DNA from: Pavona decussata
Lineage: Eukaryota
Reading direction: 5' to 3'
Length of the DNA: 64,000 nucleotides
Assembly: GCA_977016875.1 (NCBI GenBank)
Contig: CDRNST010000104.1
Span: 4,836,001-4,900,000 of the forward strand
The position numbers were made by a program, and so were the translations under genes. This document shows, piece after piece, positions 5,359 to 55,700 of this stretch (positions are counted from its first letter, which is position 1; the number at the start of each line of letters is the position of its first letter). A model generated the notes under the pieces. The model was given only the letters and a program-made list of their open reading frames with translations, ran no database searches and was not told where the DNA came from.

Positions 5359-6372
5359 CTACACCTTTGGAGTTTTAAGCTTAACTTGCAGCGGATATTG
5401 ATCATGTGTATATCCATTCAATGCTTGGATAGCAGCTTGAGCTTCTGGCAATGTAGCCATGGTGACAAAGCAAAACCCTTTGCATTGCCCCTTTTCCCAA
5501 TCCCACATAACATTTATCTTCTTTATCTCCCCATATGGCTGAAAGAGTTTATAAACTGAAGCTTGTGTTGCGCTAGTCCCAATGTTGTAAACAAACAGAG
5601 TAAAGCCTGCACCAGTCCCCCCAGAATACGACATTTGGTTAAACCCTGTCATGGAAGGCATTGGGGGTCCTCCAACCATAGGGTTGAATCGGTTGGCACG
5701 ACGATTCATCAGCGCTTGCCCCATGGGACCAATTGCACCCTGGTGATGTTGTGGACCAAGATTGAAACTTGCTCGTTCAGGCATACCAACTTGAGAAGCA
5801 CCCGGTGGGGGTTTTATTTTGGAGGTGTTATCGTCAGCAAAACGAACCCACATTATCTCTGTTGCCCCAGCAGGAATGGTGTTATTTAAGGCACTGATAG
5901 CAGCTTCAGCTTCCGACTTCAGATTGTAAAGAATAAACCCAACGCCTTTTGAGGACCCTGACATTGGGTCAGTGAGAATCTTGCTGTTGATGATGTTGCC
6001 ATATGGTTTAAATAGCTCCCTCAGGTCCTCTGACGTCCAAGTCTTTGAGATGTTACGGACGTACAAGTTAGCTCCCTTGATCCTCTCTCCTCCTTTCCTT
6101 GACAATGCAACCTTAATAAACTTGCTTTGTATTTGATGACCGTTGAGTTTATCGATTGCCAACTGAGCATGCTCGGGTGTGAAGTATTCCACAAATCCAA
6201 AGCCATAGCTGTATCCTGTTGCCTTGTGTCGGCAAATCTTGCAGGATTTGGTTGGGCCAATTTTTTGAAATAGAACCTTAAATTCTGCATCAGTGAAATT
6301 CTGTGGTAGATAGTTGATGATCAAGTTGGTTTTGTTTTCAAGTTCCGTACCATTGTCTCCTGCTTCTGCCAT
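5359..6372 (-). CDS. ELAV/Hu-family RNA-binding protein with three RRMs and Sex-lethal-like RRM1-2; single coding exon
   Basis: RRM1 TNLIINYLPQ..TGYSYGFGFVEY; RRM2 ANLYVRNI..KGVGFILY; hinge NRFNPM; RRM3 LFVYNIG..KGFCFVTM. Probable ATG at 6372 (accATGg). A 5'UTR intron lies at 6464-6916 (AAG|GTGAGC ... U17-ATCCAG). Confidence 0.92.
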   Translation of the reverse strand: MAEAGDNGTELENKTNLIINYLPQNFTDAEFKVLFQKIGPTKSCKICRHKATGYSYGFGFVEYFTPEHAQLAIDKLNGHQIQSKFIKVALSRKGGERIKGANLYVRNISKTWTSEDLRELFKPYGNIINSKILTDPMSGSSKGVGFILYNLKSEAEAAISALNNTIPAGATEIMWVRFADDNTSKIKPPPGASQVGMPERASFNLGPQHHQGAIGPMGQALMNRRANRFNPMVGGPPMPSMTGFNQMSYSGGTGAGFTLFVYNIGTSATQASVYKLFQPYGEIKKINVMWDWEKGQCKGFCFVTMATLPEAQAAIQALNGYTHDQYPLQVKLKTPKV

Positions 6373-6916
6373 GGTAGAACAAAATTTAAGCAACGGATAC
6401 AAAAATTTGGTATAGCAATGCGGCAGAAAAACGATTTCTGGGACTTTTGGCTTTAATTACTTTCTGGATAAAAAAAAAAAAAAAAAGAAACACAAGTAAG
6501 ATCTAGTCATCTAGCATAAATAAAATCATGATAAACAACTGCAATAAGCCAAAACAGTACAACGTTTTTCCGGAAAAAGTTAACTCCACATGTATGTTTC
6601 AAAACAGCTGTCAAATTTCAACACATGTATTCAGCCAGTTTTTTTAACAGACGCTACGTTCATAACCCAACGCCGACTTAGCTACTGAATTGACCATTAA
6701 ATGTAAAAGTTGTTTTTAAATATTTTAGACACAGACCTTCAGAATTTAGCACACTGGTAGTTTCCTCAGTTTGGCTTTAATATGTGTGACAAACAAAATG
6801 GTCGACTTGTCAACGAAACGCGAAGCAACACAAAACGGTTTATTACAACCTTTTCTCGACCATAAACATGGTTTTAAGTTGGCAGTCACTACTAAGGGTA
6901 ATACAATAAAGCTCAC

Positions 6917-13100: not shown

Positions 13101-16100
13101 AAAGAAGACTTACTTCTGAGACATCAGTTTCTCTTCTGAAAGACATCAGGTGGGTGTAGCTTGGGATTGGTAGAATCCTAGGCACGATTAATAGCTTGTT
13201 TTTAGGGAAGAACTTGGGGTCCAAGAGAGGTAGAAATGGTACCCACATAGTAGAACATCTTCCACTTTCCGCGCAACAATCTTTTGGAAGTATCTTGACG
13301 ATTCAAATGAAAGTTACTGATCAGTATTTGAATCCTGTGGTATCGTTTATTGCGCTATACAAGATGGCTCTCCCTTTCGAGTCCTTGGATGAAACCCTAA
13401 AATATAGCCATTCATGTGAAAGCTACTAAGCAATACTTTATTGCTGTCATGTCGATTATGTTATACATTAAGGCAATTCTCAGTTTTTAAAATCCTGAAG
13501 TGAGGTCATTCAAATTAAGTTATGTAGTGGTAATCTTCCTGTGACACTGTCTATTATGACTTACAAGACAAGTCATTTTGACTTCTTAGTCTGTGGATCA
13601 AATGAAAGCTGCTGAGTAGTTATTTCCACTTGTTCTATTTGTTCATCAACTTTTCGATGCTGAACGACTATTTAGAGGCTTGTCTCGTCTGCTTCTGTTG
13701 CTTCAGATTTACAGCAGCCGAAGCAAGTAATTTTCATTGCTGTTTCATTCCAAGATACGGGCAGTATGTTAATACATTCTCTTACTCTTACAAGGAGCTT
13801 CATGTCCATTACTATACAGTGTGCGGATAAATTAACATTTTTAAAGTGAATAAGTTTTTTTCTGTCTTCTTTTGTAGCACAGAGCTGATGAGTGAAGTAG
13901 TGAATTCTCTAGGATTATTCGTTATGCAGATTGAAGTTGACGTTTATAATTTACTGAAAGTCTGGACCTACGTTCATCTTTACCCTGACTGCACGGGAAG
14001 CTGGAAGGATGTACGCACACAAACCAATGCGTATTTTTCATCACGAGAAAGCGATTTGAGCTTTTTAGAGACTGAAGACGGCAAGGCGTTTGTTCCTGCC
14101 TTTAGAGCTATCAGGCTTCACCACGTAATAAATGACTTGCGTTCTGTACAGCTCTTGGACACGGACAGAATTATTCCTCAAGGCAAGCAGTTCTGTTGTG
14201 TGAGGCATATAGTTGTTTTATAGTCAGCTGCATTAGCGCTCGATAAACCTCGTGTATGATTGCTAGCATGAGATGCTTGAGATTTGGAAAAATACTGTAC
14301 ATCAGCTCCAATGTTTTATCCCATGCTTTGTGCTTCGTGTGCAATAAAAACCTATGATGATGGACAAGATTTCCGTTTTTATCAAAAAGCGAAGTGCAAA
14401 GCAGTGGATAAAACATTGCAGCGTTTCCTGAACGAATTCAAGGCCACATGCAAAAACTCTGTTGAATCTGAGCTAAAACAGCAAAACGCGATCTGAAGTT
14501 CAACATAGGTCGGTTATGCACTGAGCTTTTCAAGCACAATATTGAAGTACATCAAGGTCTAAGTCCTGGCCGTATCCAACCTACTTTTTTTCCAGGTTGG
14601 CTTTATCCATTGTACAAGTCCCAGTGGGCATGTATGCTACTGATGTCCCAGAGTCGCGATCTAGGACCTTCAGTCGAGAAATTTGGACATGGAGCTCTCC
14701 GGTGTGGTAGGATATTGGAAAGGAGCTCATCGGTGAGTTAGTGTCATATCTGGCCGAGCGCTAGACTCAGGGGCACCCAACGGATCGTTTCGGTAAAGTA
14801 TCTGTTCGGAAGGCCCTTAATCCCCTACAATTTTCTAAAGGGAATTTTCGCCACGAACTTTCGTGATATGGGAAATTTAAGGCCTAGTGTTTTCGGATTA
14901 ATAAAAATGTTGTTTCGGGTACCAAAAAAAGGTCAGCTAAGATTTTCGGAAAGGAAATAAGACCTAAGGTTTTCGGGAAAAGGACAAAGATGCCCTACTA
15001 ATTTCGAAAAGACTCAAGTTCCCCTAGAATGACCGAACAGATAAAAAATATTATAGCGCTGCCTTAAATGAACCTATAGAGCTTTAAAGCCACTCCAGAT
15101 CGCCTAAAATAACGTTTCAAAGGATCTAAGAGAAAATTGTCGTTGGGTGCCCCTGTAGACTGCCGGCATTAATTAGTTTTCTCTAAAAGTAACAGAACAT
15201 CTTTTGCGGGAATCGAAGATCACCTTAACTGAATTCTTGACTCTCGCATTCCCCGGGCTCGCATCTACTATCTTTGAAGAAGCTAAGAAAATTGACTTGA
15301 CTCTCGGACTACGATCTTTGAAAAAGCTAAGAAAATTAAACGAATTCCCGAAGTGTAGAGAAGCACTCAAAACAATTCTTCCCTGCCATTTTTAAAAGTA
15401 GTGCAGATGTGAGGTGAATTGTGGACAGGGTTAGGTTACTTTCCTAAATAAGCTCTGCAATGTGTTTCTTCTGTCACTGGGTACTGGTCTAGTAGCTGTT
15501 TTATTGTTCAATGTGGTATAGAGTTTTGCACTTTGGGTCTGTAAATAATAAAAGTAACTACGATCTTCGAAGAGAACTACAGTGTGGGAATAGGTCATGG
15601 GTTTTAGAGACCTGCTGGAACTGAGAAAAGGCATCATAGCTTTTGAGTAGAACTGTCTTCTGAAAGGGTTTGTCGAGTTTAGGTGTGGTATTTTTAAGTA
15701 GGCATGCTTGAGGATTTAAGCTGATGTTGGATTTGATTGGCCCTGTGATTCCTGTTTGGGTTTATTGTCTAACTTTGTACTTTTGTTATGGAAATTACAT
15801 TGGTGGTCCTCCACTTGTTATTGTCAAGCATGTAGGTATGTTTTCGCACATTGAGTTAAGCAGTTGAGTGTGAAACTAGAGCTCCCTTGGTCAGCAAACC
15901 CAAACATGTCTACAATTATGGTATATAGAGAGGTTCGCAAATAACATTAGGTGTCAGTTGTAAGTCAGAGCTGTGCTACTGAAGGAATAAAGATTTGAAT
16001 CAAAGAAGACTTCTGGTTCCTCCGTTGCATTTGCAAGCGGGTTGCTATTTTACATATTTGGTGGAGAAGTTTACCTTGTTGGATACTCTGTGAGTGGAAC

Positions 16101-18476
16101 AATGTTCTTTTACTTTTATGCACCTAGCCATTGGTCGAAATTTGCTTTGGCAGGTCGATAATGTTCTTGAATTTATTCAAGTTTGTCATGATTTTATGGC
16201 GAGCGAACGATTTCTTCATGACATTTTTCGTGCTACTTTCTCGCCGGATTATTGTTACTCGTTTAGAGAAAATCAGTTTTGTGAGGTGTTGTTTTCCTTG
16301 AAGTCATCCGGTTACGTTAGTCTAGCGCGGAACCTCATGTCTTTTGCGTCAATCCAGTACGAAGACATTTTTGTTTGAAGATTTGGTGTCAGCTGCCAGT
16401 GTGGCTGCTTTTCGGTATTCGGTGGACCGCCGTTTTAGTGGGTTGGACTAAAGTTCATTGTTGGAGTTTATTTTACTTTTATTATTGTTTTTATTGTTGG
16501 TATTTCGTCAACGTTTCAGGAAGTATGGATCGCGTTCACCACATTGCAAAGTGGATATGTGTTTTCTGTTTTGAGGAGAAGAGCTCAGTGGTATATGATT
16601 GGACAGTGTTTCGGTGCAATCATTTGTTGTGTTTGTCATGTTTTAGAAGTAGAGCCAAGGAGCTCAAGAGAATGTTTGAATGTCTGTGTGGGGCTCAGTT
16701 CCCGCCCGAGAGCGCGTATGATTACGTGGTGACTTTCACGTCTTCTGCTCGCGAAGAGGCGGAACAGATGTCTCGTTGAACATATACATTCGCCGGTTGT
16801 ATCTTCATCATTAGAAACAGTGACTTTGTCGCCACATCATTTTGTTTAGGGGCGTAAATAACTGTAAAGCGATCTATATAATGGTTTTTAACGTGTTATG
16901 TTAATCTCGTTGGCCTATTTTAGTTTTTGAGTCATACAGCATCGGGGACGATGCCGAATTTAACAAGGGGAGTATGTTAGAAAGTCAAAAGGAATCATTT
17001 TTATTAGAACGCTTTTTAGTAGTTTCAATTAATGGGTTTACGTTTAAATGAATTTCTCGATTAGGGTTTGTTCTTTGTTTAAGGTCATTCAAGTTTTATT
17101 CAAGTTTGAGCCCGTAGAGGCATTTCCTTAGTTTTTGAGGAGTACTGTCTTCTGAAAGGGTTTGTCGAGTTTTGGTGTGGCATTTTTAAGTAGGCATGCT
17201 TGAGGATTTAAGCTGACCTTGGATTTGATTGGCCCTGTGATTCTTGTTTGGGTTTATTGTCTAACTTTGTACTTTTGTTATGGAAATTACATTGGTGGTC
17301 CTCCACTTGTTATTGTCAAGCATGTAGGTATGTTTTCGCACATTGAGTTAAGCAGATGAGTGTGAAACTAGAGCTCCCTTGGTCAGCAAACCCAAACATG
17401 TCTACAATTATGGTATATAGAGAGGTTCGCAAATAACATTAGGTGTCAGTTGTAAGTCAGAGCTGTGCTAAGGAATAAAGATTTTGCTTCAAAGAAGACT
17501 TCCGGTTCCTCCGTTGCAGTTGCAAGCGGGTTGCTATTTTACAATTATAAGCTTGAAAGAGCGTTAGGGTTTTGAAAACTGGCCAATCCAATTCCACAAA
17601 GAATTGAAGGATTGAGAGGATAACCGACCTAAATGCATTTCATGTTGGTTTAGCTCAGATTCACCGTAATCTTTGCATGTGGCCTTGAATTCTTTCAGGA
17701 AACGTTCTCCAATGTTTTATCCGCTGCTCTGCGCTTCATTTTGTGATAAAAACGGAAATCTCAACATAATCATAGGTTTTAATTGCAAACGAAGAGCAAA
17801 GCAGTGGACAAAACATTGGAGCAACTCTATCTTCGATGAATGGGTTTGAATTTGGGCGATGTATCATGCGTTGCATTAAAGTGGAATAAATTAATTCTTC
17901 TCTTACTTCGTGCACCATTTCAGTTCTTCGTTTTCTTAACACCAGCCGTTGGGCGAGAGGGGGGGAGGAGGGCTTTTTTCTCAGAGGGTGTTAAATCGAA
18001 GGTGGATGCTTTATCGAGGATTTTCTATAAGCCGGTAACGTGAAGATACCTGACAAACGGTATACCTAAGCATAGAAACTCTGCTGCCTTGATAGAACTG
18101 TACAGTCTTAGTACATTTATGGTTGTGTTTCCTTTTGTATTGACAGTATTGCTGGCGTTGGACAGGATTCTCCTATGGTGTTGACATCATCATGACGTAC
18201 AGCCCCAGAGCGAGGCAATTCTTGCTGCGACGTAATACCAACACGCACCCGGTTGGCGGAGTAGTGTGTCTTCATCAACAGAGAAATCTTGTAGTGCGAG
18301 TGGCCGCGGCCTCATTCGATTCTAAGGGTTGTACGAGTTATTACAAGTGCTCTGGACTGTTAGATTTGACGCTGGATCCGGACGAAGAAAAGGCTGTCTT
18401 GCAACTCGACCGTTCAGCCGTTTTTCCCCTGAGTGTCAGTGTTCATATGGCCCTTGTGTCGCCATCAGATGTTTGA
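7173..18476 (+). CDS. GMCL1: Germ cell-less protein (BTB-BACK, CUL3 adaptor); exons 7173-7294, 9116-9201, 10021-10058, 10832-10928, 11615-11712, 12971-13149, 13878-14182, 14596-14732, 18147-18476
   Basis: Spliced protein: MGSTISS (myristoylation motif)..KRK..YIYQTLFLDGEGSDVTIHALGKDWKLHRIYMCQSAYFQSMFSGSWKES..LFVMQIEVDVYNLLKVW..FLETEDGK..LRCGRIL..YCWRWTGFSYGVD. All blocks match recalled GMCL1 and all junctions are in phase (intron 7 uses a GC donor). Confidence 0.93.
7745..8990. mobile_element. CCC-terminal non-autonomous element (EnSpm/CACTA-like) with GGTCTGAAA subterminal repeats, interrupted by a second element
   Basis: Ends CCCGGTGGGACTCCC ... GGAGTAGTCCCCCCCCCG. Repeated GGTCTGAAA(TAGGGTA) units at about 7820-7990. 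Confidence 0.5.
8025..8945 (+). mobile_element. 921-bp TAGCC..GCTA element with perfect 9-bp TSD, carrying a broken zinc-binding (ZAD-like) ORF
   Basis: TSD CGTACAGAC at 8016-8024 and 8946-8954. Termini TAGCCTGACCCACGCA / TGCGTGGGGTGCTA. ORF remnant from 8302: MAETPKQ..SASC..VCTKCYD*..RFEKAKKNVE. Confidence 0.78.
10348..10524. mobile_element. Palindromic MITE
   Basis: AAACCCTTTCTGGCTTGCTGGTATGTCAGCCGATAATGTCC is mirrored by GGACATTATCAGCTGACATACCAGCCGCCTGAAGGGGTTT. Confidence 0.65.
11178..11427 (+). mobile_element. tRNA-derived SINE with V/Meta-type conserved core
   Basis: A-box TGGCGCAGTGG, B-box GGTTCGATTCCC, core TTTTCTCCGGGTACTCCGGTTTTCCC, and AATAAA followed by a T-run. Confidence 0.8.
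11776..11933. mobile_element. TAGCC..GGCTA element with degenerate 9-bp TSD
   Basis: TAGCCGGCAGAACAGGC ... GCCTGTTCTGCAGGCTA; flanks agacaaaga/agacaaatt. Confidence 0.7.
12200..12400 (+). mobile_element. Probable RTE-clade LINE 5'UTR remnant
   Basis: GCCTTGTCATGGTG..GAGCTATGC..GGGGGTGGGGCAATAGGTTAATCACCCAGCCCCATAAAAA resembles RTE/BovB-type 5' leaders as recalled. Confidence 0.45.
12705..12895. mobile_element. MITE (TGTGCAGTTC..GAACCGCAC family)
   Basis: Inverted termini TGTGCAGTTCTCGAAAATATCCATAC / GTATGGATTTTTTCTGGAACCGCAC. Confidence 0.65.
13295..13640 (+). repeat. Degenerate ~100-bp tandem repeat (3-4 units)
   Basis: Recurring ATTCAAATGAAAG(C/T)TACTGA.CAGTA.TT..CTGTG...TTTATT...TACAAG...GAGTC..TGGAT units at about 13300, 13410, 13508 and 13598. 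Confidence 0.6.
14305..14533. mobile_element. Partial palindromic MITE; inverted relative to the copy at 17604-17825; full copy at 55119-55475
   Basis: Shared TTCCTGAA.GAATTCAAGGCCACATGCAAA..TGAATCTGAGCTAAA..TAGGTCGGTTAT block. Confidence 0.75.
14768..15155. mobile_element. hAT-like MITE with apparent 6-bp TSD
   Basis: Perfect 15-bp TIR CAGGGGCACCCAACG / CGTTGGGTGCCCCTG, flanked by TAGACT on both sides. Confidence 0.8.
15408..17543 (+). mobile_element. Non-coding LTR retroelement (Gypsy-type ends, TRIM/LARD-like)
   Basis: About 410-bp direct repeats (15640-16053, 17133-17543) ending TTTACA. PBS TGGTGGAGA at about 16058 (tRNA-Ala-complementary). PPT TCGGGGACGATGCCGAATTTAACAAGGGGAGTA precedes TGTTAG at 16975. 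TATA-like and AATAAA signals lie within the repeats. No gag/pol motifs internally. Confidence 0.8.
17604..17825. mobile_element. Partial palindromic MITE (reverse complement of 14305-14533)
   Basis: Reverse complement aligns by eye to 14305-14520. Confidence 0.75.
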
Positions 18477-20026
18477 TGTATTGGATAAATTAATATTTGA
18501 ATAAATTAATATGGGTATGAACCGTACCGATCCCCGAAGTAAGAAAGCAGACTAGTAAGTTATGTAAACTTCAAGGCGAAAACTTGCTCCAGGAGCAAAT
18601 ACGATATCAGACGTTTTTGGACTCTTTGCCAAAATAATTAATTAACATACTAAATTATAATACTAAATATATAAAATTCATATTTTGTATGTAATACCAT
18701 AATCATTCGTTATTATTCTGAATTATAATCAATAGTGAAATAATTGTTTAAAGTAAATGTTGAAAGCAGAATTGTCTCTTTCTTTACCCATGGGTCCTAA
18801 GCGAATCGTTGGGCATCTATAGCTCTGCGTTTCATGTTACTCGAATGCTCACCTATTGTAGCTGTCAAAGTTCTTGTTCGGCCGACCTCCTCTATATAGC
18901 CTGCAGAATAGGCGTTATTATTTTTTAATGTGTTTTTAGAATAGAGTAAGAAGTGAGCGCGAAGCTTGAGGCGAGGGCTACCTCCAGAGGTTCTTCCTTC
19001 TTTCCACTCTTCCTTTTTTCCTTGCGCGTTCCAGAGGAGAGCTTCAATCATTACCAACCTTTTTTCCCTAGGTGTAAATTCTCCTCTCTCTTGTTAGTTC
19101 GAAGGCGTTAGTTTTTGTATAAAATTGTCTCAACACTTTTGTCCATGCATATGATTGTTGCCTGGTTACGTTGTTACATGGCCAGAATACTTCCATTTCT
19201 TCCTTCTGATGTGATTAAGCATTTTCTCTTGATCTGTTGCTGTCCACAGATCTTCATTTCTGATTAAATTCGGCCATTTGACTCCAAAGATGTAGCGTAC
19301 GAATCGATTTACAAAACCTGTGACCTGTGGTGTTTTTACCACCGGTCAGGATCAGTTGTCTGAATTTCTCAGCGTTAGATTCTTCCTTTCGCAGAAAGTC
19401 AGACTGCTCGCGTTTAGTTTGTTCAAGGATGGATGCTTCGAACTTTTTTCTCCTTCCCAATAAGGTGACGAATGAATCTTGACGCAACCTGGAAACTGTT
19501 CCACGAAAGTACGGCTGGACAAGTATTGCGTCGTTCGCTTAGTAAGCAGACAGTACGCAAACTTATCTGGCTCAAAGAAAGGGCACTCCCTGGATTCGCT
19601 TATTCCTTCTAAAGGTAAATATAATAATTTGGATAAGGGAGAATCAGGAATTACAGAGAAATCCTATGAAATCTTCGGACTCCCGTACGAATAGCAAATA
19701 CAAGTCGCCGTGCGGGTGCCGTACGAATAGCCACTGGGTTTTCTTTTTTTTTTTGTCAGTAAGAGAATTCCTCCGAATTCGGAAAAAAAAGCCTCTGACC
19801 CCCTGGGTACCGGTATTGTGGCGTTTTTGCTGGCTCCACCCCTCCCTACAGGGACTAACTTTAGTCATTTTAGTTACCAGTTCTTCACGTCTGAAGAAAA
19901 AGTTGTCAAAGCTTATGTCAAAGCACTTGTCAGAGTAAACATGGATTTGTTCCGTTCTTGCGCAAGTTGAATACTTTTTCCAAACGTTACTGAAGAAAAA
20001 AGATCCAAGCAGTCACGTAGATTGGA

Positions 20027-21481
20027 ATGGGAGGGTCTCTTTCGCGGAGTCCGAGGCAGAAATCCGAGAAAAAAGATAAAGCAAATGGATCTGTGCGAGC
20101 GACAGTAGTTGCGAATCAAAGTGACAAGGGAATTAAAGCTGGAAGGCGCGAAAAAACTGCTGAAGGGACGGACAAAGAAGCAGGCGGTTTGGAAAGAAAA
20201 GACAGCAGGGATTTCTGGATATCGCATATGAGAAAGAACTCTCGAGATGCTCTAAATTCTCAAACCACCAACACACAAACACCGCGCTCGAAAACTCCGC
20301 GGGAGTTAAGCCCTCAGGGAAAACAACAAAATGGCCAACACGTTGAGGTGCGTTCCGTCCCAGGCAAGAACAACAATCTAGCAAGCCCAGATAGTCCTTC
20401 ACTGAGTATTCAGACGAGTAATAACGAGGGAAAGCGCGTGTCGATGAATGGTGCAGCTGCTCATGTTGTCGGGCCTGAAAATCGAGATGTTCGAGGTTCG
20501 AATTCCATGGTTGTCCCGCATTCGCCTGGATTGCTTCCTGGGCAGGTTAGCGGGAGCATTGATGCGTCAAATTTGATCACAATCAACGAACTGTACAATT
20601 ATTTCTGGGACGGAGCGATACATTCAAGTATCTTCGATCCTTCTTATATGCTTGTTGTAGATGCTAGACCTCGAGCGGATTACGATCGCGGTCATATTAT
20701 TCTAGCACGCTGCTCGGCTTCTCTGCACAATGATTTAACTTCCGCAATGTATGGTTACGGTTACAGCACAGGTGGCGAAGAGGTGATCGCTAATCGGCTT
20801 AGTGAGTACACACACGTCGTTGTATACGGCAACGCAGTCTCGGACACTAGAAATGAAGATCTACCCGAGATTAAACTTATGAGGGAGCTGATGAATTATG
20901 AATTAGTGGAACCCCTTTTTCTGATTTCTGGATTTGAGAGCTTTCAACAAGCTCTGCCTTTTATGTGCACAACCAAGGATCTGACAATACGCCGTGACCA
21001 TAAAGAAATCACAGTATACCCTTCTGTGATTTTGGAGAACCAGCTCTATTTGGGTCGAGGCGAGCAAGCAACCAATAGCAAAATAGTATCAGATTTAAAG
21101 CTCACACATGTCATCAACATTGGAAGTGAGCATGCCTCGCCGTTCACTGATCGCATTCAGTATCTTAATATCAAGCTGGATGATAATCCTTCTAGTGATT
21201 TGAAAATTTATTTCTCAAAGGGTTATCAGTTTATAAGCGATGCACTGTCTGCAGGTGGACGGATCCTGGTACATTGCAATCTTGGCGTTAGCCGCAGCTC
21301 CACAATTGTAATTGCTCACTTAATGAAATCAAGACAGTGGACCCTTAAAGTGGCTCACAACTACGTCAGAGATAGGAGGACCTGCATTCGGCCTAATCGT
21401 GGCTTTTTACATCAACTGTCAGACTGGGAACAAAGTTTATTTGGAACTAAGTCTACTGATCCTGATGAGTTGTGGTTTTAG
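20027..21481 (+). CDS. STYXL1/MK-STYX-like rhodanese(CH2) + dual-specificity phosphatase with intact catalytic motif; single coding exon
   Basis: 484-aa ORF with ELYN..DPSYMLVVDAR..YDRGHI (CH2); YPSVILENQLYLG..QA...KI..DLKLTHVIN; general acid LDD; VHCNLGVSRS; AHLM; RPNRGFLHQLSDWE. N-terminus MGGSLSRSPRQKSEKK. Confidence 0.9.
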   Translation: MGGSLSRSPRQKSEKKDKANGSVRATVVANQSDKGIKAGRREKTAEGTDKEAGGLERKDSRDFWISHMRKNSRDALNSQTTNTQTPRSKTPRELSPQGKQQNGQHVEVRSVPGKNNNLASPDSPSLSIQTSNNEGKRVSMNGAAAHVVGPENRDVRGSNSMVVPHSPGLLPGQVSGSIDASNLITINELYNYFWDGAIHSSIFDPSYMLVVDARPRADYDRGHIILARCSASLHNDLTSAMYGYGYSTGGEEVIANRLSEYTHVVVYGNAVSDTRNEDLPEIKLMRELMNYELVEPLFLISGFESFQQALPFMCTTKDLTIRRDHKEITVYPSVILENQLYLGRGEQATNSKIVSDLKLTHVINIGSEHASPFTDRIQYLNIKLDDNPSSDLKIYFSKGYQFISDALSAGGRILVHCNLGVSRSSTIVIAHLMKSRQWTLKVAHNYVRDRRTCIRPNRGFLHQLSDWEQSLFGTKSTDPDELWF

Positions 21482-24054
21482 CTGCTTCAACATTGCCAAC
21501 ACCACAAGGGTTTTTCTTGGCGATTGAATTCAACCAAACAGAATGTCGGTAGTTGAAAAAGATGGCAACTAAAACTGAAGGTGAAGTTGCAAGGCTTCTT
21601 TGATAAAAGAGCACAACACAAATATACAATTATTGTTCTTAAAAATGTTGTGCTTTTTTTGAAAATCACTGTTAGTTTGCTGTTGTCAGGACCTCTTGGT
21701 TGATAACTGGTGTGTTTCATGTGTGTGGGAGTTGAATTGAATTGTGAAAATGTTACTCCCAACAGTATGTTAGATTTCACAAACAGGTGCCTGGATGAAG
21801 AGAGAGAACATGGAACAATGTCTTGTCAAAGCTAGAACAAGAACTTCTTCAGATTTCATGTTTGCCACATATGCAATCGTAAAAAAGTGGTTATACGATT
21901 AATTTGCGTTACAATAAAAAAATTTGTATTGAACTGGTAATAATAAGAGTTCAATTCTTTTCAAGAATCATCTTGTATTTAGGAAATCATTACTCCTTCC
22001 ACCCAACGTTTCTGGTGATACCTGCTTCAGCTAGGAAATTTTTTTATTACTAGAATGCATTTCAGTGTCTAGGATCTGTACATGTATATATATTTACTGA
22101 AGGGTATAAATTTGATGTGTGCTAAGATGTTTTAATATTTAATTACAAAGATGAGATGTAAATACCAGTAATATTCTGTTGCTAGATTTTGTTTATGTTT
22201 GTCTAAGAATATCCCTCAAACGTATCAGATATGGTGGTTTGTGAATTAAGATTGTAATAATATTATTCATGAAGCATGTGGTAATATCCCATGCTCCTGA
22301 CTGACTCAATCTTTTTCTTTGCTTATTAAACCCTCTTCCCTTTAGAGTAATTTTTGGGCCTGAAAATTTATACGGGCACCCTTTCTTTTAAATAAGGAAA
22401 AAGGCGAGTCCGAGAATAGAAATCATCGCAGAACCAAGTTTTGGTTTATGTAAGATTTAATGAAGAAGATACAATATTTCAACTCTATTCCAGAGTCATA
22501 GTCATGTCATGTCACAAGGATGTTATACCAGCAGTATTTATACCTAAGATAATTAGCATATGGTACACAATGAATAAAGTTCTGAGAACTTGGTTCTGCA
22601 ATGATTTCTATTCTCAGACTCGCCTTTTTCCTTATTTGTTCAAAACTGTCGGATGGATCTGGATTTAATACCCTTTCTTTTGTTTCACATGAGTAGCTTA
22701 TACAAGCATCAGTGTTTTCAGATACAAGTAAACAAAAACCTGCTTAAGCCATCTGTGAAAAAAACTAAGCAAGAGACTTCTAAAACAATGGAAGGATTTT
22801 TATGGGAAACATTTCTTCTGTGGAGCAAGACTTTGCAGCTCTCCAGGATGTGGTCTCACAATAGTACATTTTGGGACCAAAGTCATTGCTTGGATCAACC
22901 TCAAGCATCAATGATTATTTAAATCAATGTGGAAAAATTGAGTTGCTTAGTGCTTGGGTATTTACCCAGACTGCAATTATATTTATTTTTTGTACTATAA
23001 GTCGAGTTACATTTAATGTACTTTTTCAAGGTTTCGTAAGCTTGCTGATAATTAGGTACCAAAGATTTGGTTACATGTAAATTTCCTCAAAGGAATACAG
23101 TTTACCTAGGGCTTTTAATGTTCCAGTACATTTTGCTATTTATCAAATGAATGTAATTTTTAATAGTCATGGCACTGCAACAGTTTTCCCAGTGTGTGGA
23201 TTTTGATACAAAAGCAGTGCAACTTATTTGTGATCATATATTTATTTAGGTATGTAAATATTCTTTTTTGGTCATGATTGTAAGAATAATGTTTGGTGTA
23301 AATAGTCTTTCACCCTAATTTACTATTTGAAGACAGTATAAAATTGCAAGCAGCTATTTATTTGATTATTGCATTAAATTTTTATAGCTTTGTAGATAAT
23401 TGATATTTAAAAAATACAAATGATTTAGAGGAAGATGATTGACTGTTCATTTCTTTGAGTTTCCCGATACTGTTTTTTTTATTAATCTGTGTGTAATTCC
23501 TGTTAAAAAGTGAGTCTTTGAGCTAGACATCTAGTTGCCCAACAATGTGTAAGGTTTGGCATACAGACTTACCTAATAAGGTTAGCCTTTTTTGTCAAAA
23601 CCCTATAATTTTGAAGATTCTAAGCAATAACAAAATGGGGCTAAAAAAAACCCTGATCTCTCAAGACAGACATCTTGCATGAAAAAAAAACAAACAAACA
23701 GAGCTCTTAGGACAAGTGTGGAGATCACCCCCCCCCCCCCCCCCACCTTGCATATTATCTGTAACTTGATTGGCTGAAGAGGGAGCAAACTCATAGTTAT
23801 GGGGTAAAGGTGGGGGGGGGGGGGGGGATGGAGGAGTGTGGTGTTTGGGTGTCTGAATTATATGCTTGCTGTACCCTTTATTCCAGATTACTTTGCTCTA
23901 ACTTATTTAGTGGCTCCCCTACTCCTCATGCTATTTCAAATATTATTAAACATTGCATTTTGCCTTGTTCTTTCCATGTCTGCCATCATGAACTCAGCTT
24001 CCTTCCTTCCCTTATCTCCTCCACTCATATACCTCCTATTCCCTTTGTTGCCAC

Positions 24055-49702: not shown

Positions 49703-52700
49703 ATGGCTAAGCCTGGGGATGCCGACAAACAGTACAAGCTAGTTGTGGTAGGCGGTGGTGGAGTCGGCAAATCCGCGCTTACAATTCAGTTTATTCAGTC
49801 GCATTTCGTAAGTGACTATGACCCGACCATTGAAGACAGCTACAGAAAACAGTGTGTCATCGACGAAAGAGTCGCCCATCTAGACAGTAAGTGAGCGAGT
49901 TTTGTTGTTTTCGGTTAAACTGTAGAGAAACGGCGCTTAAATGTAAAACGCGAAAGTGTCGGTTGATCTGGGAGTGTCGGAGTTCTCTGTGCTCGAACCT
50001 AAAAGAGGTGTATCAAAAATGTACGGTCGTATATAACCGTACATTTCCAGCATTTTTTAGGGGAGAGTTGACCTGTATTTATAGGAACATTTGTATTATT
50101 GTGTTTCCTAGCATTCTACATTAATACAGAAGTATTTGGCATGGAGTATTTTAGCTGCAGGCTATGTGTAATGCCTAATACCACGGAAATGAAATCCTTG
50201 TCGTGATCGATCAGATCCATATTTTGGAAATAACATCAAATATGCTTGCCCGTCAATTGATCTGTACAGACCACAACAATATCTTTTTAATGGGAAATTA
50301 CAGCCTGATTGTGTACTTATTGAAGACCTACATTAACCACAAATCTTAACCGTCGTTTTGTCGATTAAAACAACAGAGGAAACGAAGATTGGTTGCTGAA
50401 ACTACGTTGTCTATTATTGCTGCATAGTTTCAGTAAATCCGTTCACTTACAACCAAAGCTGTTCTTGGCGTTTTAGCTGTGTAAAACAGTTTTTGATTAT
50501 CTTGAAGTAACACATCTTCGATGTGTCTGTTATACACTTTTCCTCTTTCGCTGATTCGTTTATAAGGGTGGCATCGATCAAAAGGAAAATGATCGCTGAA
50601 GAATAATTCTTATGTTGCATGTGAGTGCCGATTAGTCTCCCGTTTTACCTTATCACACCTATAAATAAAATCATTATATTTGACACAAAAGCATGAAATT
50701 GTAAAACCGTGGAAACACAATGAAATTTGATGTTCTAATAATATTATTGTCGTCAAACAAGCATCTTTTATGTCCCAAAAGGAAGAAACTTTCTTTGAGA
50801 ATATTCCATTTCATTTTAGGAATATTATTAATAAAATTATAGCAAATGAACTCGATGTCTTTTGTTTGATTCCAATTTGTCGCTTTCTTGCTTAAACGAA
50901 TTAGCTGAATGTAATGGTGAACAATGTCTTTATTTCAAATTATGAATCAAATAATTTTTAATTCACTTTTGATACTCAAAATATCTTTCTCCATCCTTTA
51001 TTACAAACAATATTTCGTTCTTACTTATTTAGTTCTACGTGTTTATAATTTATTTGTAACAATTATTTTTTTTTCATGAAAAGCCTAAAATTCTCATTGG
51101 TCGGTTCAGAATGTATATATTACCGGTCAATTTCTTGAGATATTTATCTTGTTTCTCAAGATATTTATCTTGTATTTAATATTTCCTGCACATTATTACT
51201 TGCACCTGCTAAGGAAGAATTTTAATTTTGTGTCCTATCAAAAAACATTTCTGAATGACTATTCTTACGGCCATTACATTTTTATAATGGCCTGTGAGTT
51301 TTCACCTGTGTGAGCCATTTGCCTGTTTAGTGTGCACTAGGTGTTCTAAGAAATAAAATTCACATCTAATTCAAAAGAAAACAAACCTGCAAAAGGTGTG
51401 GTGTTCATCATGTCTCAAGCATGGGACAAGAGTTCTCTGAGATGAACCCATGATCTCAAGTCATACAGTGATCAGATGCTCTAACCACTAAACTGACACT
51501 TAAAGGACAGTGCCTCCAAGTACAGACATATTTTTGCTTGTTTCATGACTATGCAGGGAAAGCAGATCTTAGCAAGGGCTACTGAAATCCAGAAAGAAAA
51601 TTAGGGGTAACCACATATTTTTCAGAGGTAATTATTAAATGACAATAATTCTAAAAAAGCTTTATAAACAAAACAATGTATGGCCGCCTTCTTTTCCAAA
51701 CTGAAGCTAAAAGTTATCTCTGAAAAATGCATGGTTACCCCCAGGCCCCAGTTGTTCAAAGGCCAAATAACTTTATCTGCTGGATAAGGCACTATTCAGG
51801 GTCTAAAATATACTTCACGTAAAACCTTTTCCAAGGTTTTCGTACACTCCCAAACTTAACTGTGGTAAGAGTGTGCATATTCGCTTGCACAAGAGGAAAT
51901 ACTGAAATCTTTGCACAGATTGGAACTGACGGATAGCGACTTATCCACTGGATAAAGTTATCCGGCCTTTGAACAACTGGACCCAGTTCAATTACTATTA
52001 TAGCCATTACTAAGATCTTCTTTTCCCTCATAGCCATAAACTGAACAAAAATACCTTGGAAATAGTAGGCTTGTTCCTTAAGAAATTAATGAGAGTTTCT
52101 CAGACCATCTTAAGATGCCAAGAACATATGCGCAATAGCAAAAGAAGGCACCATTCTTAAATTTATCTCATTTGTGATACATGTATTTTTTCAATCAGTG
52201 ACAGGCATACTCAGGAAAACAAAATCCTAGTGCTCCTATCAGGAGTCGAACCTAAGACCTTCCGATTACTAGTTTGGATGCTCTACCACTGAGCTACAGG
52301 AGACTCGTGGGAGCTAAGGCCATTAAACTAGGTTCATGTGACAAACAAACACATGTATAGTATTTCTGGGGTAACGTGACTTTTTTCGTTGAATCCTGTT
52401 CAATATACCTTGATGATTTGTTTCATCGTGAAAACAACTGGCTGTGACATAAAAACAAAGCTCTGGTTATATCTACAAAATACACTGCTAGTGCAACTGT
52501 TCTATTTCAGTGTGTGCAATGGCGTGTGCTGTCCAATTACATACAAATTAGGCATGACGCATACACTGTCCTATTAATTCTCAAATCATGGCTGCTTATA
52601 GCCAACCAGATTTGAGAATTTTGTCATAGTACTGTTATGATTAGTATTGTCACAACCCTCTTCCCGATATGCTATCTTTTTTATTTCTTATCTATATGGC

Positions 52701-55700
52701 ATTTATTTTTGTTAGATTAAACTTGTACTACATTAAGGTCAAGAACCTTCTGAATTAACTCTGTCTGATTGCAAACTGGCTGTTTTACCATGAGGGATCT
52801 AGAGTTATCATCAAAATGATGATGCCACACCTCTCTCTCCCCCCTGTAATGGGCTAAAGATATGGAAACATGTATTGAATGTTAATTGTTTCTGAGGGAA
52901 CATTACTTCTTTAATTGAATGCATAATAGCTTTGATTGTTATCCCTGCCGTAGTGATCTCATAAAATGCAACATGTGTAACTTGTGAGGTGAAATTTCAA
53001 GTTCATCGAGTTATGACTTGTAGCTGTCTTATTCAGCGTGTAGGGACTCCTTATCAGACCAAATGGCTAGGAAATGGTAAAAATGGAAAAATAGAAAGAA
53101 AAATAAGGAAACTGCAAACAGGTCATGCAAAGATGATGAGAACACAGTCAGCTGTAGATAAGATCTTTTTCAGCAGATGAAATTCCCCAGCAAATAGTGC
53201 TTGGCTTAGCTATACCTCTGTTGATACAAGTGGTTCCCAAAATTTTAACAGTTCCATAAATTCCCAGTATAGGCCCACAAAATCTCAATAATAAGTCCTT
53301 AAGCTGGTAGACTGTTTGCGTTAACTGTTTTTAGCGGTTAACTTAGTGTTTTAGGCTGTTTTTATCACCAGGCCCAGCCAATTTCTCTCCGATAATAACC
53401 TCTGTTATAAAGTTCTCCCTGAAAAAAAGGCAAGTTTTGAAAAGTCCCTTGAACGCTGGGATTGTATTCAGCATTTTAGAGTATTTCATTAGATTAATCA
53501 TTTTTTTTTTCTGATACATTATTATAAATTAATATTAATATTTCCCAAAAGCTGAGTCTTCATATTTATTTAATATTTATGTTTTTCTTACCCACAGTTC
53601 TTGATACAGCTGGCCAAGAGGTATGTTTGTTGTTTTTGTTGTTTTTTTAAATTCTAAATTTATTTGTTATACATGTATATCTAGATGAGAAAATATTCAA
53701 ATTTTATTTATTGCAGACCACAGTAATGTAACATAAAGTTTCGAGCTTGTCAAAACAAGAGAACCATTGTTGGTGAACTCCTCCCCTAAATGGACTCTTA
53801 GGCCCAGGTCAAACCTCGAAGTTCACATGTGGCTAACTTGTGTTGAAAAACTTCAATCATGAATCATCTTGAACTTGGCGTCGATTCAAATGCAGAGCAA
53901 AAATAAAATTTTAGGCCAGCAGAAGTTAAAAGAAAAGAAAATAATATAATAATTCTTATTTTTCTTTGTCTGAGTTGACTCATAAAAAGATTGACATTAG
54001 TTCTGAAGATGATCTTCAGGCATTCTGTCCGTCTAAAGTAGACAGATAAAACGTTTTGGTTGATCCAAACACAAAGGGGGTGGGGGAAGGATGTGTTGGC
54101 CCAGGCTAGGCAGAACCTGAAGTCTACCTCAGTAACTAATAAATTCTTATAATAAGCAGTTTCACTCCAAAGCAGTAATTCCCACCGAAATTCAAATCAA
54201 ATGTGGTTGAAACTTATATAATAATGTTATGCTCTTCCAGGAGGCAAAAGAAGAGGAGTGTTTCATGTTAATATGTTTTTGTTTTTGTTTTTGTTTTTTG
54301 TTTTTTTTGTTTTGTTTTTTTTTTTTTTTGAGAATCTTCCTGGTGCATCATTGATGAAAATGATTAAGAACATCATATTAATTTTTTTTCTGGATGAAAT
54401 TTTTTTAGTTAAATTCACTTCTTATTCCAATCCTTCTTTTTAGCATTATCCATTGTAAAACGCCATGAGGAAGTATTGATTTAGCACTATATAAGTATAT
54501 GTTTTTATTGTTATTGTTATCGCCTTTGTGTCATTGAATATTTAATTTAGTCAGCTATTTATTTCATTTTAGGAATTTAGTGCAATGAGAGAACAGTACA
54601 TGAGAAATGGTGAAGGATTTTTATTAGTTTTCTCCGTCATAGATCGTTCAAGGTTTGTAACAGCATTGCATTCATTCGCATCGTTGTCCTCTTTGTTTAT
54701 TGACATGACATCATGCATGTATAAAACCGTGCAAGTTTTTAAATCTGTGTTAATTCCTCTAACTTAACTTTGCAACTTAACTTTGCAGCTTTCAAGAAAT
54801 TCAGACCACATTTCACCCGCAGATTCTACGAGTTAAAGATAGGTATGCATTTTAGGGGCAGTCTTTAATTTCTATAAAACAAAAAAGAATAGAGAATTGC
54901 TGCTGTGGTTGTTTTGCCTTATGGTTCTGTTTATTTGTATCTGTTAGATTTCTACCTGTGGATTCTCAGATTGGTTACGAATGTTTGGTTTTATCAACAA
55001 AGTTTAGCGCTTGAATCTGGCCAAATTGCCTTGTTGATAAAACCAAGTATTTTTTCCTCTCCCCACCAGTGCAACACCACAGTTTCGTTAGGAAATAACC
55101 CCTACCTTTATCCTTAGATTGAAAGGCTCGGAGCATAACCAACCTATGTCAAATTTCAGATTGCTCTTTGTTGTTTTAGCTCAAATTCACCAGAGTTTTT
55201 GCATGTGGCTTTGAATTCCTTCAGGAAACATTGCTACAATTTTTTTCTGCTCCTTTGCTCTTCATTTGCAATAAATTAAAAACCAGGCTATGATTATGGG
55301 CAAAATTTCTGTTTTTATCACAAAACGTCAAGTGCAAAGCAGCAGAAAAAACAAATTGGAGCAATGTTTCCTGAAGGAATTCAAGGCCACATACTAAATT
55401 ACGGTGAATCTGAGCTGAAACAACAAAGAGCAATCTGAATTTCGACATAGGTCAGTTCTGCTCTGAACCCTTCAATTTCTTCTTCTTCATTATTGTCGTT
55501 GAATCACTTGGTTGCAGGTCAGAATTCCCCATGATGCTGGTTGGAAACAAATCTGATTTAGAACCAGAGAGAACAGTAAGTTATTGACAGTAGATTTCAA
55601 TCAACTCATTTATTTATTAATAATTTATACATGTATATTATTTTGTTAATTTTTATTTGATTTCTGTCATTGTTCACAGCACAAGGTGCCAATGGGCCAA

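Follow-up and report, generated by a model that had tools for sequence, protein, structure and literature searches.

Is a coral gene that resembles STYXL1, the pseudophosphatase also called MK-STYX, but keeps an intact active site, the coral's own STYXL1 in a still active state, a classical mitogen-activated protein kinase (MAPK) phosphatase (MKP), or a member of another line? The question arises from a stretch of 64,000 nucleotides of the genome of the scleractinian coral Pavona decussata (GCA_977016875.1, contig CDRNST010000104.1, positions 4,836,001 to 4,900,000, forward strand), referred to here as the window, in which a single open reading frame (ORF) encodes a CH2 (rhodanese-like) domain followed by a dual-specificity phosphatase (DSP) domain. 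A preliminary description of the locus had taken the product for an active, probably myristoylated member of the STYXL1 lineage. In our analysis the ORF is, with good confidence, a functional intron-less gene for a predicted Cys-based dual-specificity phosphatase that is a paralogue, probably the sister, of STYXL1. It belongs to a set of catalytically intact relatives, termed here the active family, while STYXL1 proteins that lack the catalytic His-Cys pair are termed dead.

The answer turns on a second gene. Jellyfish and other dead-type queries, run against the coral genome (602 Mb in 1180 contigs), detected a separate STYXL1 of ~10 exons on the reverse strand of contig C206 at ~614157-623339 (loci L046 and L047). 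Its P-loop exon, DGRTVLLSSTLGISRSVSVAIAYYMW, contains LLSSTLGISRS, with Ser at both the His and the Cys positions, and its last exon ends in MQPTRGFIEQLSRWEEKMFGSIVTDISEPDY followed by a stop codon, giving the terminus TDISEPDY where bird STYXL1 ends in TDVSEPNY. When compared with the STYXL1 fragment XP_020613844.1 of the coral Orbicella faveolata, three of the four matched exons were 80-90% identical and the fourth 59%; these exons, and the MKP exons of the coral, were compared singly and not as a joined model. By its sequence, the C206 locus is the true STYXL1 orthologue of this genome. A search with the active window protein as query had found no second copy in the coral genome, which was a false negative for STYXL1 because the latter is too divergent and split into ~10 exons. 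With a separate dead STYXL1 present, the placement of the window protein in the STYXL1 orthologue line has to be given up, and "active STYXL1" therefore becomes "active sister of STYXL1". As a separate observation on the C206 locus, two candidate exons, QYPRLSDPNYLLLL and YLSFADTRERQDY, both encode a 'YL.L.D.R' stretch.

Dead STYXL1 proteins were found well beyond this coral. In an exhaustive HMMER search with bird STYXL1 as the query, the first ~48 matches were mostly proteins of ~300 amino acids (several were fragments or longer models) with dead P-loops, including VFSxLGISRS, IYSNLGISRSS, AFSVLGISRST, IFSDLGISRSI and LSSTLGISRSV; where the active P-loop has H-C, the dead clade has F/Y/S/V-S or other substitutions. 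Of those with an initial Met, most begin with the CH2 domain itself (M..LCEP). The sources were the acoel Convolutriloba, the jellyfish Sanderia, Octopus, the flatworm Macrostomum, the ctenophores Mnemiopsis and Bolinopsis, the starfish Asterias, the rotifer Adineta, the coral O. faveolata and the teleosts Fundulus and Knipowitschia, and therefore echinoderms, rotifers, teleosts and cnidarians hold both the dead and the active kinds. Behind the dead types came the active family at E 1e-35 and weaker, cnidarians first, and then MKP-type proteins near E 1e-18. The P-loop IFSTQGISRS, attributed earlier to vertebrate STYXL1 as a whole, fits the mammal-type sequences found here (and Hinton 2010); birds have VFSSLGISRS.

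Once invertebrate STYXL1 sequences were included, three trees consistently separated the two kinds. A quick tree of 83 rows recovered a dead STYXL1 clade, an active clade and an MKP clade with support of 95, 85 and 94, respectively, and a tree of 34 rows under LG+G4 recovered the first two with 100 and 99. The careful tree (45 rows, site-heterogeneous model) gave a dead STYXL1 clade running from ctenophore to mammal (100/99) that excludes the window protein, an active animal clade (95/89) that includes it together with echinoderm, amphioxus, tunicate and teleost proteins, and an MKP clade (99/99) into which the coral's own three MKP exons fall but the window protein does not. Proteins of the sponge Oscarella (96/75) and the choanoflagellate Hartaetosiga (81/40), both starting with MGC, branch just outside the active animal clade, and the dead and active clades unite against the MKPs and the protist Rhod-DSPs with 89/91. 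The approximately unbiased (AU) test on the 34 rows rejected a grouping of tetrapod STYXL1 with the chordate active proteins (p 3e-48); LG+G4 is said to reject true clades slightly more often, which is immaterial here because the difference in log-likelihood was 193.

Shared motifs agree with this grouping. The tail RPNRGFxxQLSxWE...G...TDxx(E/D)(P/L)x(F/Y) is terminal in STYXL1 of bird, marsupial, starfish, acoel and coral and in the active family, and the P-loop core LGxSRS is common to both; MKPs have HCxAGxSRS, PN(F/L)NFM(G/R)QLL and unrelated tails. Trees and motifs together identify the active family as a catalytically intact paralogue of STYXL1 and, probably, its sister. The duplication that separated them seems to predate animals, since the sponge and the choanoflagellate have active-type proteins. 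Apart from these groups, a protein of the unicellular holozoan Pigoraptor chileana (EukProt, P0060) was placed as sister to the dead STYXL1 clade in the careful tree (99/96); its P-loop, VFCNMGVSRSS, keeps the Cys and has lost the His, and may represent an intermediate state toward the pseudoenzyme.

The catalytic apparatus of the window protein is complete. The STYXL1-like motifs that had been read from the ORF, namely NELYNYFWDGAIHSSIFDPSYMLVVDAR, YPSVILENQLYLGRGEQATNSKIVSDLKLTH and PNRGFLHQLSDWEQSLFGTKSTD, are all present, as are the P-loop VHCNLGVSRSS at residues 415-425 and the L384-D385-D386 stretch. In an alignment of 114 relatives H416, C417, G420, S422, R423, S424 and D386 are invariant (114/114), which upholds the description of the active site as catalytically intact. 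Pfam places DSPc at residues 340-469 (E 2e-35) and Rhodanese at 207-307 (E 1.7e-4, barely past the cut-off). An AlphaFold2 model built on the same alignment shows residues 180-484 as a confident two-domain body with a predicted local distance difference test score (pLDDT) mostly above 90, in which the CH2 domain is a confident alpha/beta fold. The solved structure closest in sequence is STYXL1 (9d2f_H, E 2.6e-28), which aligns over both domains (window protein residues 187-481 against 10-318), and those closest in fold by Foldseek are also STYXL1, 9fqr_Xs and 9d2f_H, with template modelling (TM) scores by target of 0.82-0.85; the DSP domain superposes on the catalytic domains of DUSP5, DUSP7, DUSP14, MKP-2 and SSH2 with a root-mean-square deviation of 1.1-1.3 Å. 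The HCx5R(S/T) signature, the general-acid Asp and the DSP fold of Cys-based dual-specificity phosphatases (PF00782) are thus all in place. Human MK-STYX gains phosphatase activity once its His and Cys are restored (Hinton 2010, PMC2873733), and a STYXL1-type scaffold therefore supports catalysis when both residues are present. Since signature, general acid and fold are intact and MK-STYX can be reactivated in this way, catalysis by the window protein is very likely. The CH2 domain was described as free of an Arg-cluster MAPK docking motif, and this holds: the stretch equivalent to the kinase-interaction motif (KIM) of MKPs and MK-STYX, IILARCSASLHND, has a single Arg, and the same applies across the active family.

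Ahead of the two domains lies an N-terminal extension of ~175 residues, reported as disordered and starting with MGGSLS and a basic cluster; all three features were found, and in the AlphaFold2 model residues 1-175 have a pLDDT of 34-55 and no secondary structure. The N-myristoylation pattern of PROSITE (PS00008) is G-{EDRKHPFYW}-x(2)-[STAGCN]-{P}, and the G-G-S-L-S-R of the window protein fits it. M1, G2 and S4 do not vary among 15 cnidarian orthologues, S6 and R7 hardly do, and the hexacoral consensus MGxSLSRSPRQKSxKKxK is conserved. Across the family as collected, 66 of 131 members have an MG...[STAGCN] start, many as MGSC(I/L)SC or MGC; MGAC.S also occurs, amphioxus has MGQVLSS and Styela MGNGSSK, and starts of the MGSC.SC, MGC or MGxxxS type recur in Oscarella, Hartaetosiga, amphioxus, Styela and teleosts. 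The earlier suggestion of myristoylation is therefore borne out in the motif and its conservation, while the lipidation itself is predicted from them; the protein is probably membrane-anchored through an N-terminal lipid, and the basic cluster RSPRQKSEKKDK may act as an electrostatic membrane-binding patch. A conserved island, E56-RKDSRDFWISHMRKNS-72, lies within the extension, and its residues E56, R57, D59, S60, W64, H67, R69 and S72 are invariant in the 15 cnidarian sequences (hexacoral consensus E56-R-K/R-D-S-K-x-F-W-I-S-H...R-K-N-S72). At the position matching an R-K-x-S site, octocorals have RRNS and the hydrozoan Hydractinia has RRAS; such sites may be phosphorylated.

The ORF itself has the properties of a maintained gene. 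It is uninterrupted over 484 amino acids, begins with ATG in the context ggaATGg with an in-frame stop two codons 5' of it, is the longest ORF of the window (the runner-up has 347 amino acids), and has been called in the same form on an identical contig in the European Nucleotide Archive (ENA). Its orthologues include proteins of 477-486 amino acids with 57-95% identity, those of 484-486 amino acids at 100% coverage; among them is OS493_022729 of Desmophyllum pertusum. For the ratio of nonsynonymous to synonymous substitution rates (dN/dS) we used as reference a ~80%-identical coral orthologue on a 2.5-kb contig, L028, and obtained 0.055 for the domains, 0.36 for the extension, 0.25 for its first 75 residues and 0.14 overall, which indicates that purifying selection acts on the gene. 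The blastn match to L028, 79% identical over its whole length, extends 188 bases 5' of the ATG.

Word-based protein searches returned ~150 relatives, nearly all with VHCNLG(V/I)SRSS. The hallmarks of the active family are a V/I-H-C-N-L-G-x-S-R-S-S P-loop (looser in early branches), a KIM-less CH2 domain, a STYXL1-type tail and usually an MG motif, and the window protein has all of them, together with a place in the active clade in each of the three trees (support 85, 99 and 95/89). Members occur in a choanoflagellate, a sponge, cnidarians, bryozoans, rotifers, echinoderms, amphioxus, tunicates and teleosts, and none from a tetrapod was seen among the matches examined. Databases name them STYXL1 (for several relatives, by both NCBI and JGI), DUSP2-like, DUSP5, DUSP10-like, DUSP16-like or 'probable rhodanese domain-containing DUSP'. 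The label STYXL1 in NCBI covers two different teleost genes, one dead-type (Fundulus P0283, Knipowitschia P0308) and one active-type (Anabas P0227, Engraulis P0334), and the active-type teleost proteins so named have an intact VHCS(M/L)GRSRSS where birds have VFSSLGISRSS. The active gene of Anabas testudineus (L031, 10001-12250) is flanked by ECD/SGT1 and P4HA, and STYXL1 of the bird Zonotrichia (L032, 10001-20952) by MDH2 and TMEM120A; neither arrangement is conserved in the coral, in which ECD/SGT1, TMEM120, P4HA and MDH-type genes all lie on other contigs. No description of the active family, or of its separation from STYXL1, was found in the literature searched. The window gene is an ordinary member of an old, unnamed and uncharacterised CH2-DSP family.

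Other readings of the locus can be weighed on this evidence. That the gene is the coral orthologue of STYXL1 itself, with activity lost only in vertebrates, would agree with STYXL1 being the top solved match by sequence and by fold, with the STYXL1 label on several relatives, and with a first tree, built without invertebrate STYXL1, in which birds fell among the active family. This is nevertheless very improbable: the multi-exon gene on C206 with its dead P-loop and STYXL1 terminus is present in the same genome; the dead proteins of ctenophores, jellyfish, acoel, octopus, flatworm, starfish, Orbicella and teleosts form one clade with tetrapod STYXL1 (100/99); the AU test rejects tetrapod STYXL1 and the chordate active proteins as one clade; and the neighbours of bird STYXL1 differ from those of the teleost active gene. 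The picture of birds on a long branch within the active family was given up once the bird STYXL1 query had been run in HMMER, and the AU tests on that first data set (fish with birds, p 0.31; birds with the MKP exons, p 0.20) decided nothing. A loss of activity on the tetrapod side, suggested by teleost "STYXL1" with an intact Cys, was likewise ruled out by the differing synteny, by the dead-type STYXL1 of Fundulus and Knipowitschia and by the AU test.

A classical MKP of the DUSP1/2/5/10/16 kind, which would dephosphorylate MAPKs, has the same CH2 plus DSP architecture and lends its names (DUSP2-like, DUSP5, DUSP10-like, DUSP16-like) to NCBI orthologues, and an AU test with only short MKP exons did not reject a grouping of bird STYXL1 with MKPs (p 0.20). 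Against these points stand the missing Arg-cluster docking motif, the P-loop HCNLGVSRSS where MKPs have HCxAGxSRS(A/V), and PNRGFLxQL where they have PN(F/L)NFMGQLL. Three separate coral MKP-type genes, moreover, occupy the MKP clade that excludes the window protein (99/99), and over the same 80-residue segment a bird STYXL1 query scored 63-77 bits with the window protein and 40-53 bits with the coral MKP exons, so that this reading is improbable too. In these three genes, L002 (C175), L004 (C263) and L005 (C77), an intron splits the DSP domain near Pfam position 66-69; the genome also holds a single-exon atypical DUSP on C237 (L003). The window gene is a single exon while the other DUSP genes and the STYXL1 of this genome are exon-split, as a retrocopy or an otherwise non-functional intron-less ORF might be, but such an origin is hardly credible given the dN/dS of the domains (0.055, with the 79%-identical orthologue as reference), full-length orthologues of 453-486 amino acids across Anthozoa, uninterrupted full-length ORFs on the ENA contigs of many relatives, the conservation of the 188 bases 5' of the ATG, and an amphioxus gene that is compact too (1380 bp for 397 amino acids). 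Several points weigh against the preferred reading, that of an active, lipid-anchored sister of STYXL1. The sister relation reached 56 in the quick tree, where it was unresolved, and is moderately supported in the careful tree (89/91), whose MKP outgroup is thin, with two full-length MKP-like proteins and three single exons. The lipidation call is a pattern match rather than the output of a dedicated predictor, and about half of the collected relatives have no MG start, although a good many of these are fragmentary or come from doubtful gene models. Biochemical data for any member of the active family were not found in the literature searched. Two further points of the preliminary description are supported: in the phylogeny that it proposed as a check the window protein does not cluster with classical MKPs, and STYXL1 is its nearest solved relative.

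Table 1. Features of the phosphatase gene in the window (positions counted from the first nucleotide of the window)
Feature	Position	Strand	Basis or remark
Conserved 5' flank (5' untranslated region and/or promoter), colinear with the coding sequence	19839..20026	+	blastn match to contig L028
CH2-DSP phosphatase coding sequence, complete, single exon	20027..21481	+	484 codons and stop; orthologues, dN/dS
Disordered N-terminal extension, residues 1-175	20027..20551	+	AlphaFold2, dN/dS 0.36
M-G-G-S-L-S-R, N-myristoylation-type start (Gly2, Ser6, no Pro7)	20027..20047	+	Conservation in cnidarians, pattern match
Basic cluster RSPRQKSEKKDK, directly 3' of the putative lipidation motif	20045..20080	+	Read from the sequence
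Conserved island E56-RKDSRDFWISHMRKNS-72 in the extension, with two basophilic-kinase-type R-K-x-S sites	20192..20242	+	15 cnidarian sequences
Rhodanese/CH2 domain, ~residues 183-315, without catalytic Cys and without Arg-cluster kinase-interaction motif	20573..20971	+	Pfam, AlphaFold2, STYXL1 alignment
Dual-specificity phosphatase catalytic domain, ~residues 331-469	21017..21433	+	Pfam DSPc, fold comparison
Asp386 codon, DUSP general-acid position	21182..21184	+	Asp in 114/114 aligned members
P-loop V415-HCNLGVSRS-S425 with nucleophile Cys417 and Arg423	21269..21301	+	Invariance in 114 sequences
C-terminal tail PNRGFLHQLSDWEQSLFGTKSTDPDELWF, common to STYXL1, not MKPs	21392..21478	+	Tail comparison

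Elsewhere in the window, a direct repeat of ~415 bp (95.7% identity) lies upstream of the phosphatase gene at 15637-16054 and 17129-17543; related copies, more strongly diverged, were seen near 14305-14483 and 55169-55477, and the sequence is therefore probably a dispersed repeat element. An inverted repeat pair of 51 bp (96% identical) is found ~1 kb downstream of the stop codon at 22390-22440 and 22587-22637. The runner-up ORF of 347 amino acids, at 5359-6402 on the reverse strand, encodes three RRM_1 domains (Pfam E 8e-57) and represents an RNA-binding gene. A tRNA-like sequence at 52230-52303 on the reverse strand scored 43.2 bits with the Rfam tRNA model, above the gathering score, and was assigned no anticodon by ARAGORN; it is perhaps a repeat of tRNA origin or a degenerate tRNA.

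A mechanism consistent with these features can be proposed. Gly2 would be myristoylated co-translationally, and the myristate together with the adjoining basic cluster would keep the enzyme on the cytoplasmic face of a membrane, MGGSLS followed by basic residues being a combination classically used for reversible membrane binding; in relatives with a Cys at positions 3-7, palmitate would be added. Cys417, Arg423 and Asp386 would hydrolyse phospho-Tyr and/or phospho-Ser/Thr on substrates whose recruitment, because the CH2 domain has no MAPK docking cluster, probably differs from that of MKP substrates and would rely on something other than the classical docking motif. The R-K-x-S sites of the extension would be candidate targets of kinases, whose action could weaken membrane attachment or modulate activity.

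A conjecture on where such an enzyme might work can be drawn from its relative. Mammalian STYXL1 sits in the stalk of axonemal radial spoke 3 (RS3), where it binds CFAP91, MORN5 and CFAP61, the first two being known partners of the mouse and bovine proteins, and adjoins an AKAP14/PRKAR2A hub (bioRxiv 10.1101/2025.05.19.654877; PMC11779644); male mice that lack it are infertile (PMC10761714). After a pre-animal duplication STYXL1 might have served ever since as a dead RS3 scaffold, while a lipid-anchored sister, from choanoflagellates to teleosts, kept the ancestral reaction at or near the cilium, for example by opposing RS3-anchored protein kinase A. We regard this scenario as unlikely; its link to the cilium is pure conjecture, based on the location of STYXL1, the dual-acylation-type N-termini and the R-K-x-S sites. 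If it were true, the active family would give direct access to the ancestral substrate of STYXL1.

As regards the coral gene, the result is a modest one, a normal, conserved family member; the wider consequences concern STYXL1. Its death was not a vertebrate event, for the clade was already without His-Cys in ctenophores, cnidarians and acoels, and its non-catalytic role is therefore very old. STYXL1 also has a living, catalytically intact and seemingly unstudied sister family in tractable animals (zebrafish-type teleosts, amphioxus, sea urchin relatives and Nematostella-type cnidarians), and substrate trapping with that family offers a realistic way to find what the STYXL1 scaffold formerly acted upon. 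The two families are mixed in public annotation, which can distort comparative studies. An evolutionary study of MK-STYX from 2022, which used gene symbols and included 26 fish, reported very high between-species distances (PMC8907265); we suspect that these may be inflated, if both paralogues were pooled under one symbol.

Set against known systems, the window protein shares with the classical MKPs (the DUSP1/4/6/10/16 groups) a CH2/rhodanese domain followed by an active-type DSP domain and the triad of Cys, Arg and Asp, but differs from them in the missing Arg cluster, in the P-loop and PN...QL motifs and in clade. DUSP15 (VHY) and DUSP22 (JSP-1) are N-myristoylated atypical DUSPs. They resemble the window protein in combining a DSP domain with an N-terminal Met-Gly myristoylation signal, whereas they have no CH2 domain and carry the lipid anchor directly on the catalytic domain; in similarity to the window protein among solved structures, both rank far below STYXL1 and the MKPs. 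STYXL1 (DUSP24) comes closest, having the same CH2 plus DSP architecture and domain arrangement (TM by target 0.82-0.85), the ELYN start of the CH2 domain, the LGxSRS core and the C-terminal tail, and likewise no classical Arg-cluster docking motif. Unlike the window protein, STYXL1 is without the His-Cys pair in all lineages sampled, ctenophore to mammal, begins at the CH2 domain (M..LCEP), has neither a lipidation motif nor an extension, and is multi-exon in the coral genome; the window protein keeps His-Cys-x5-Arg, bears a putatively lipidated extension of 175 residues and is encoded by a gene of its own.

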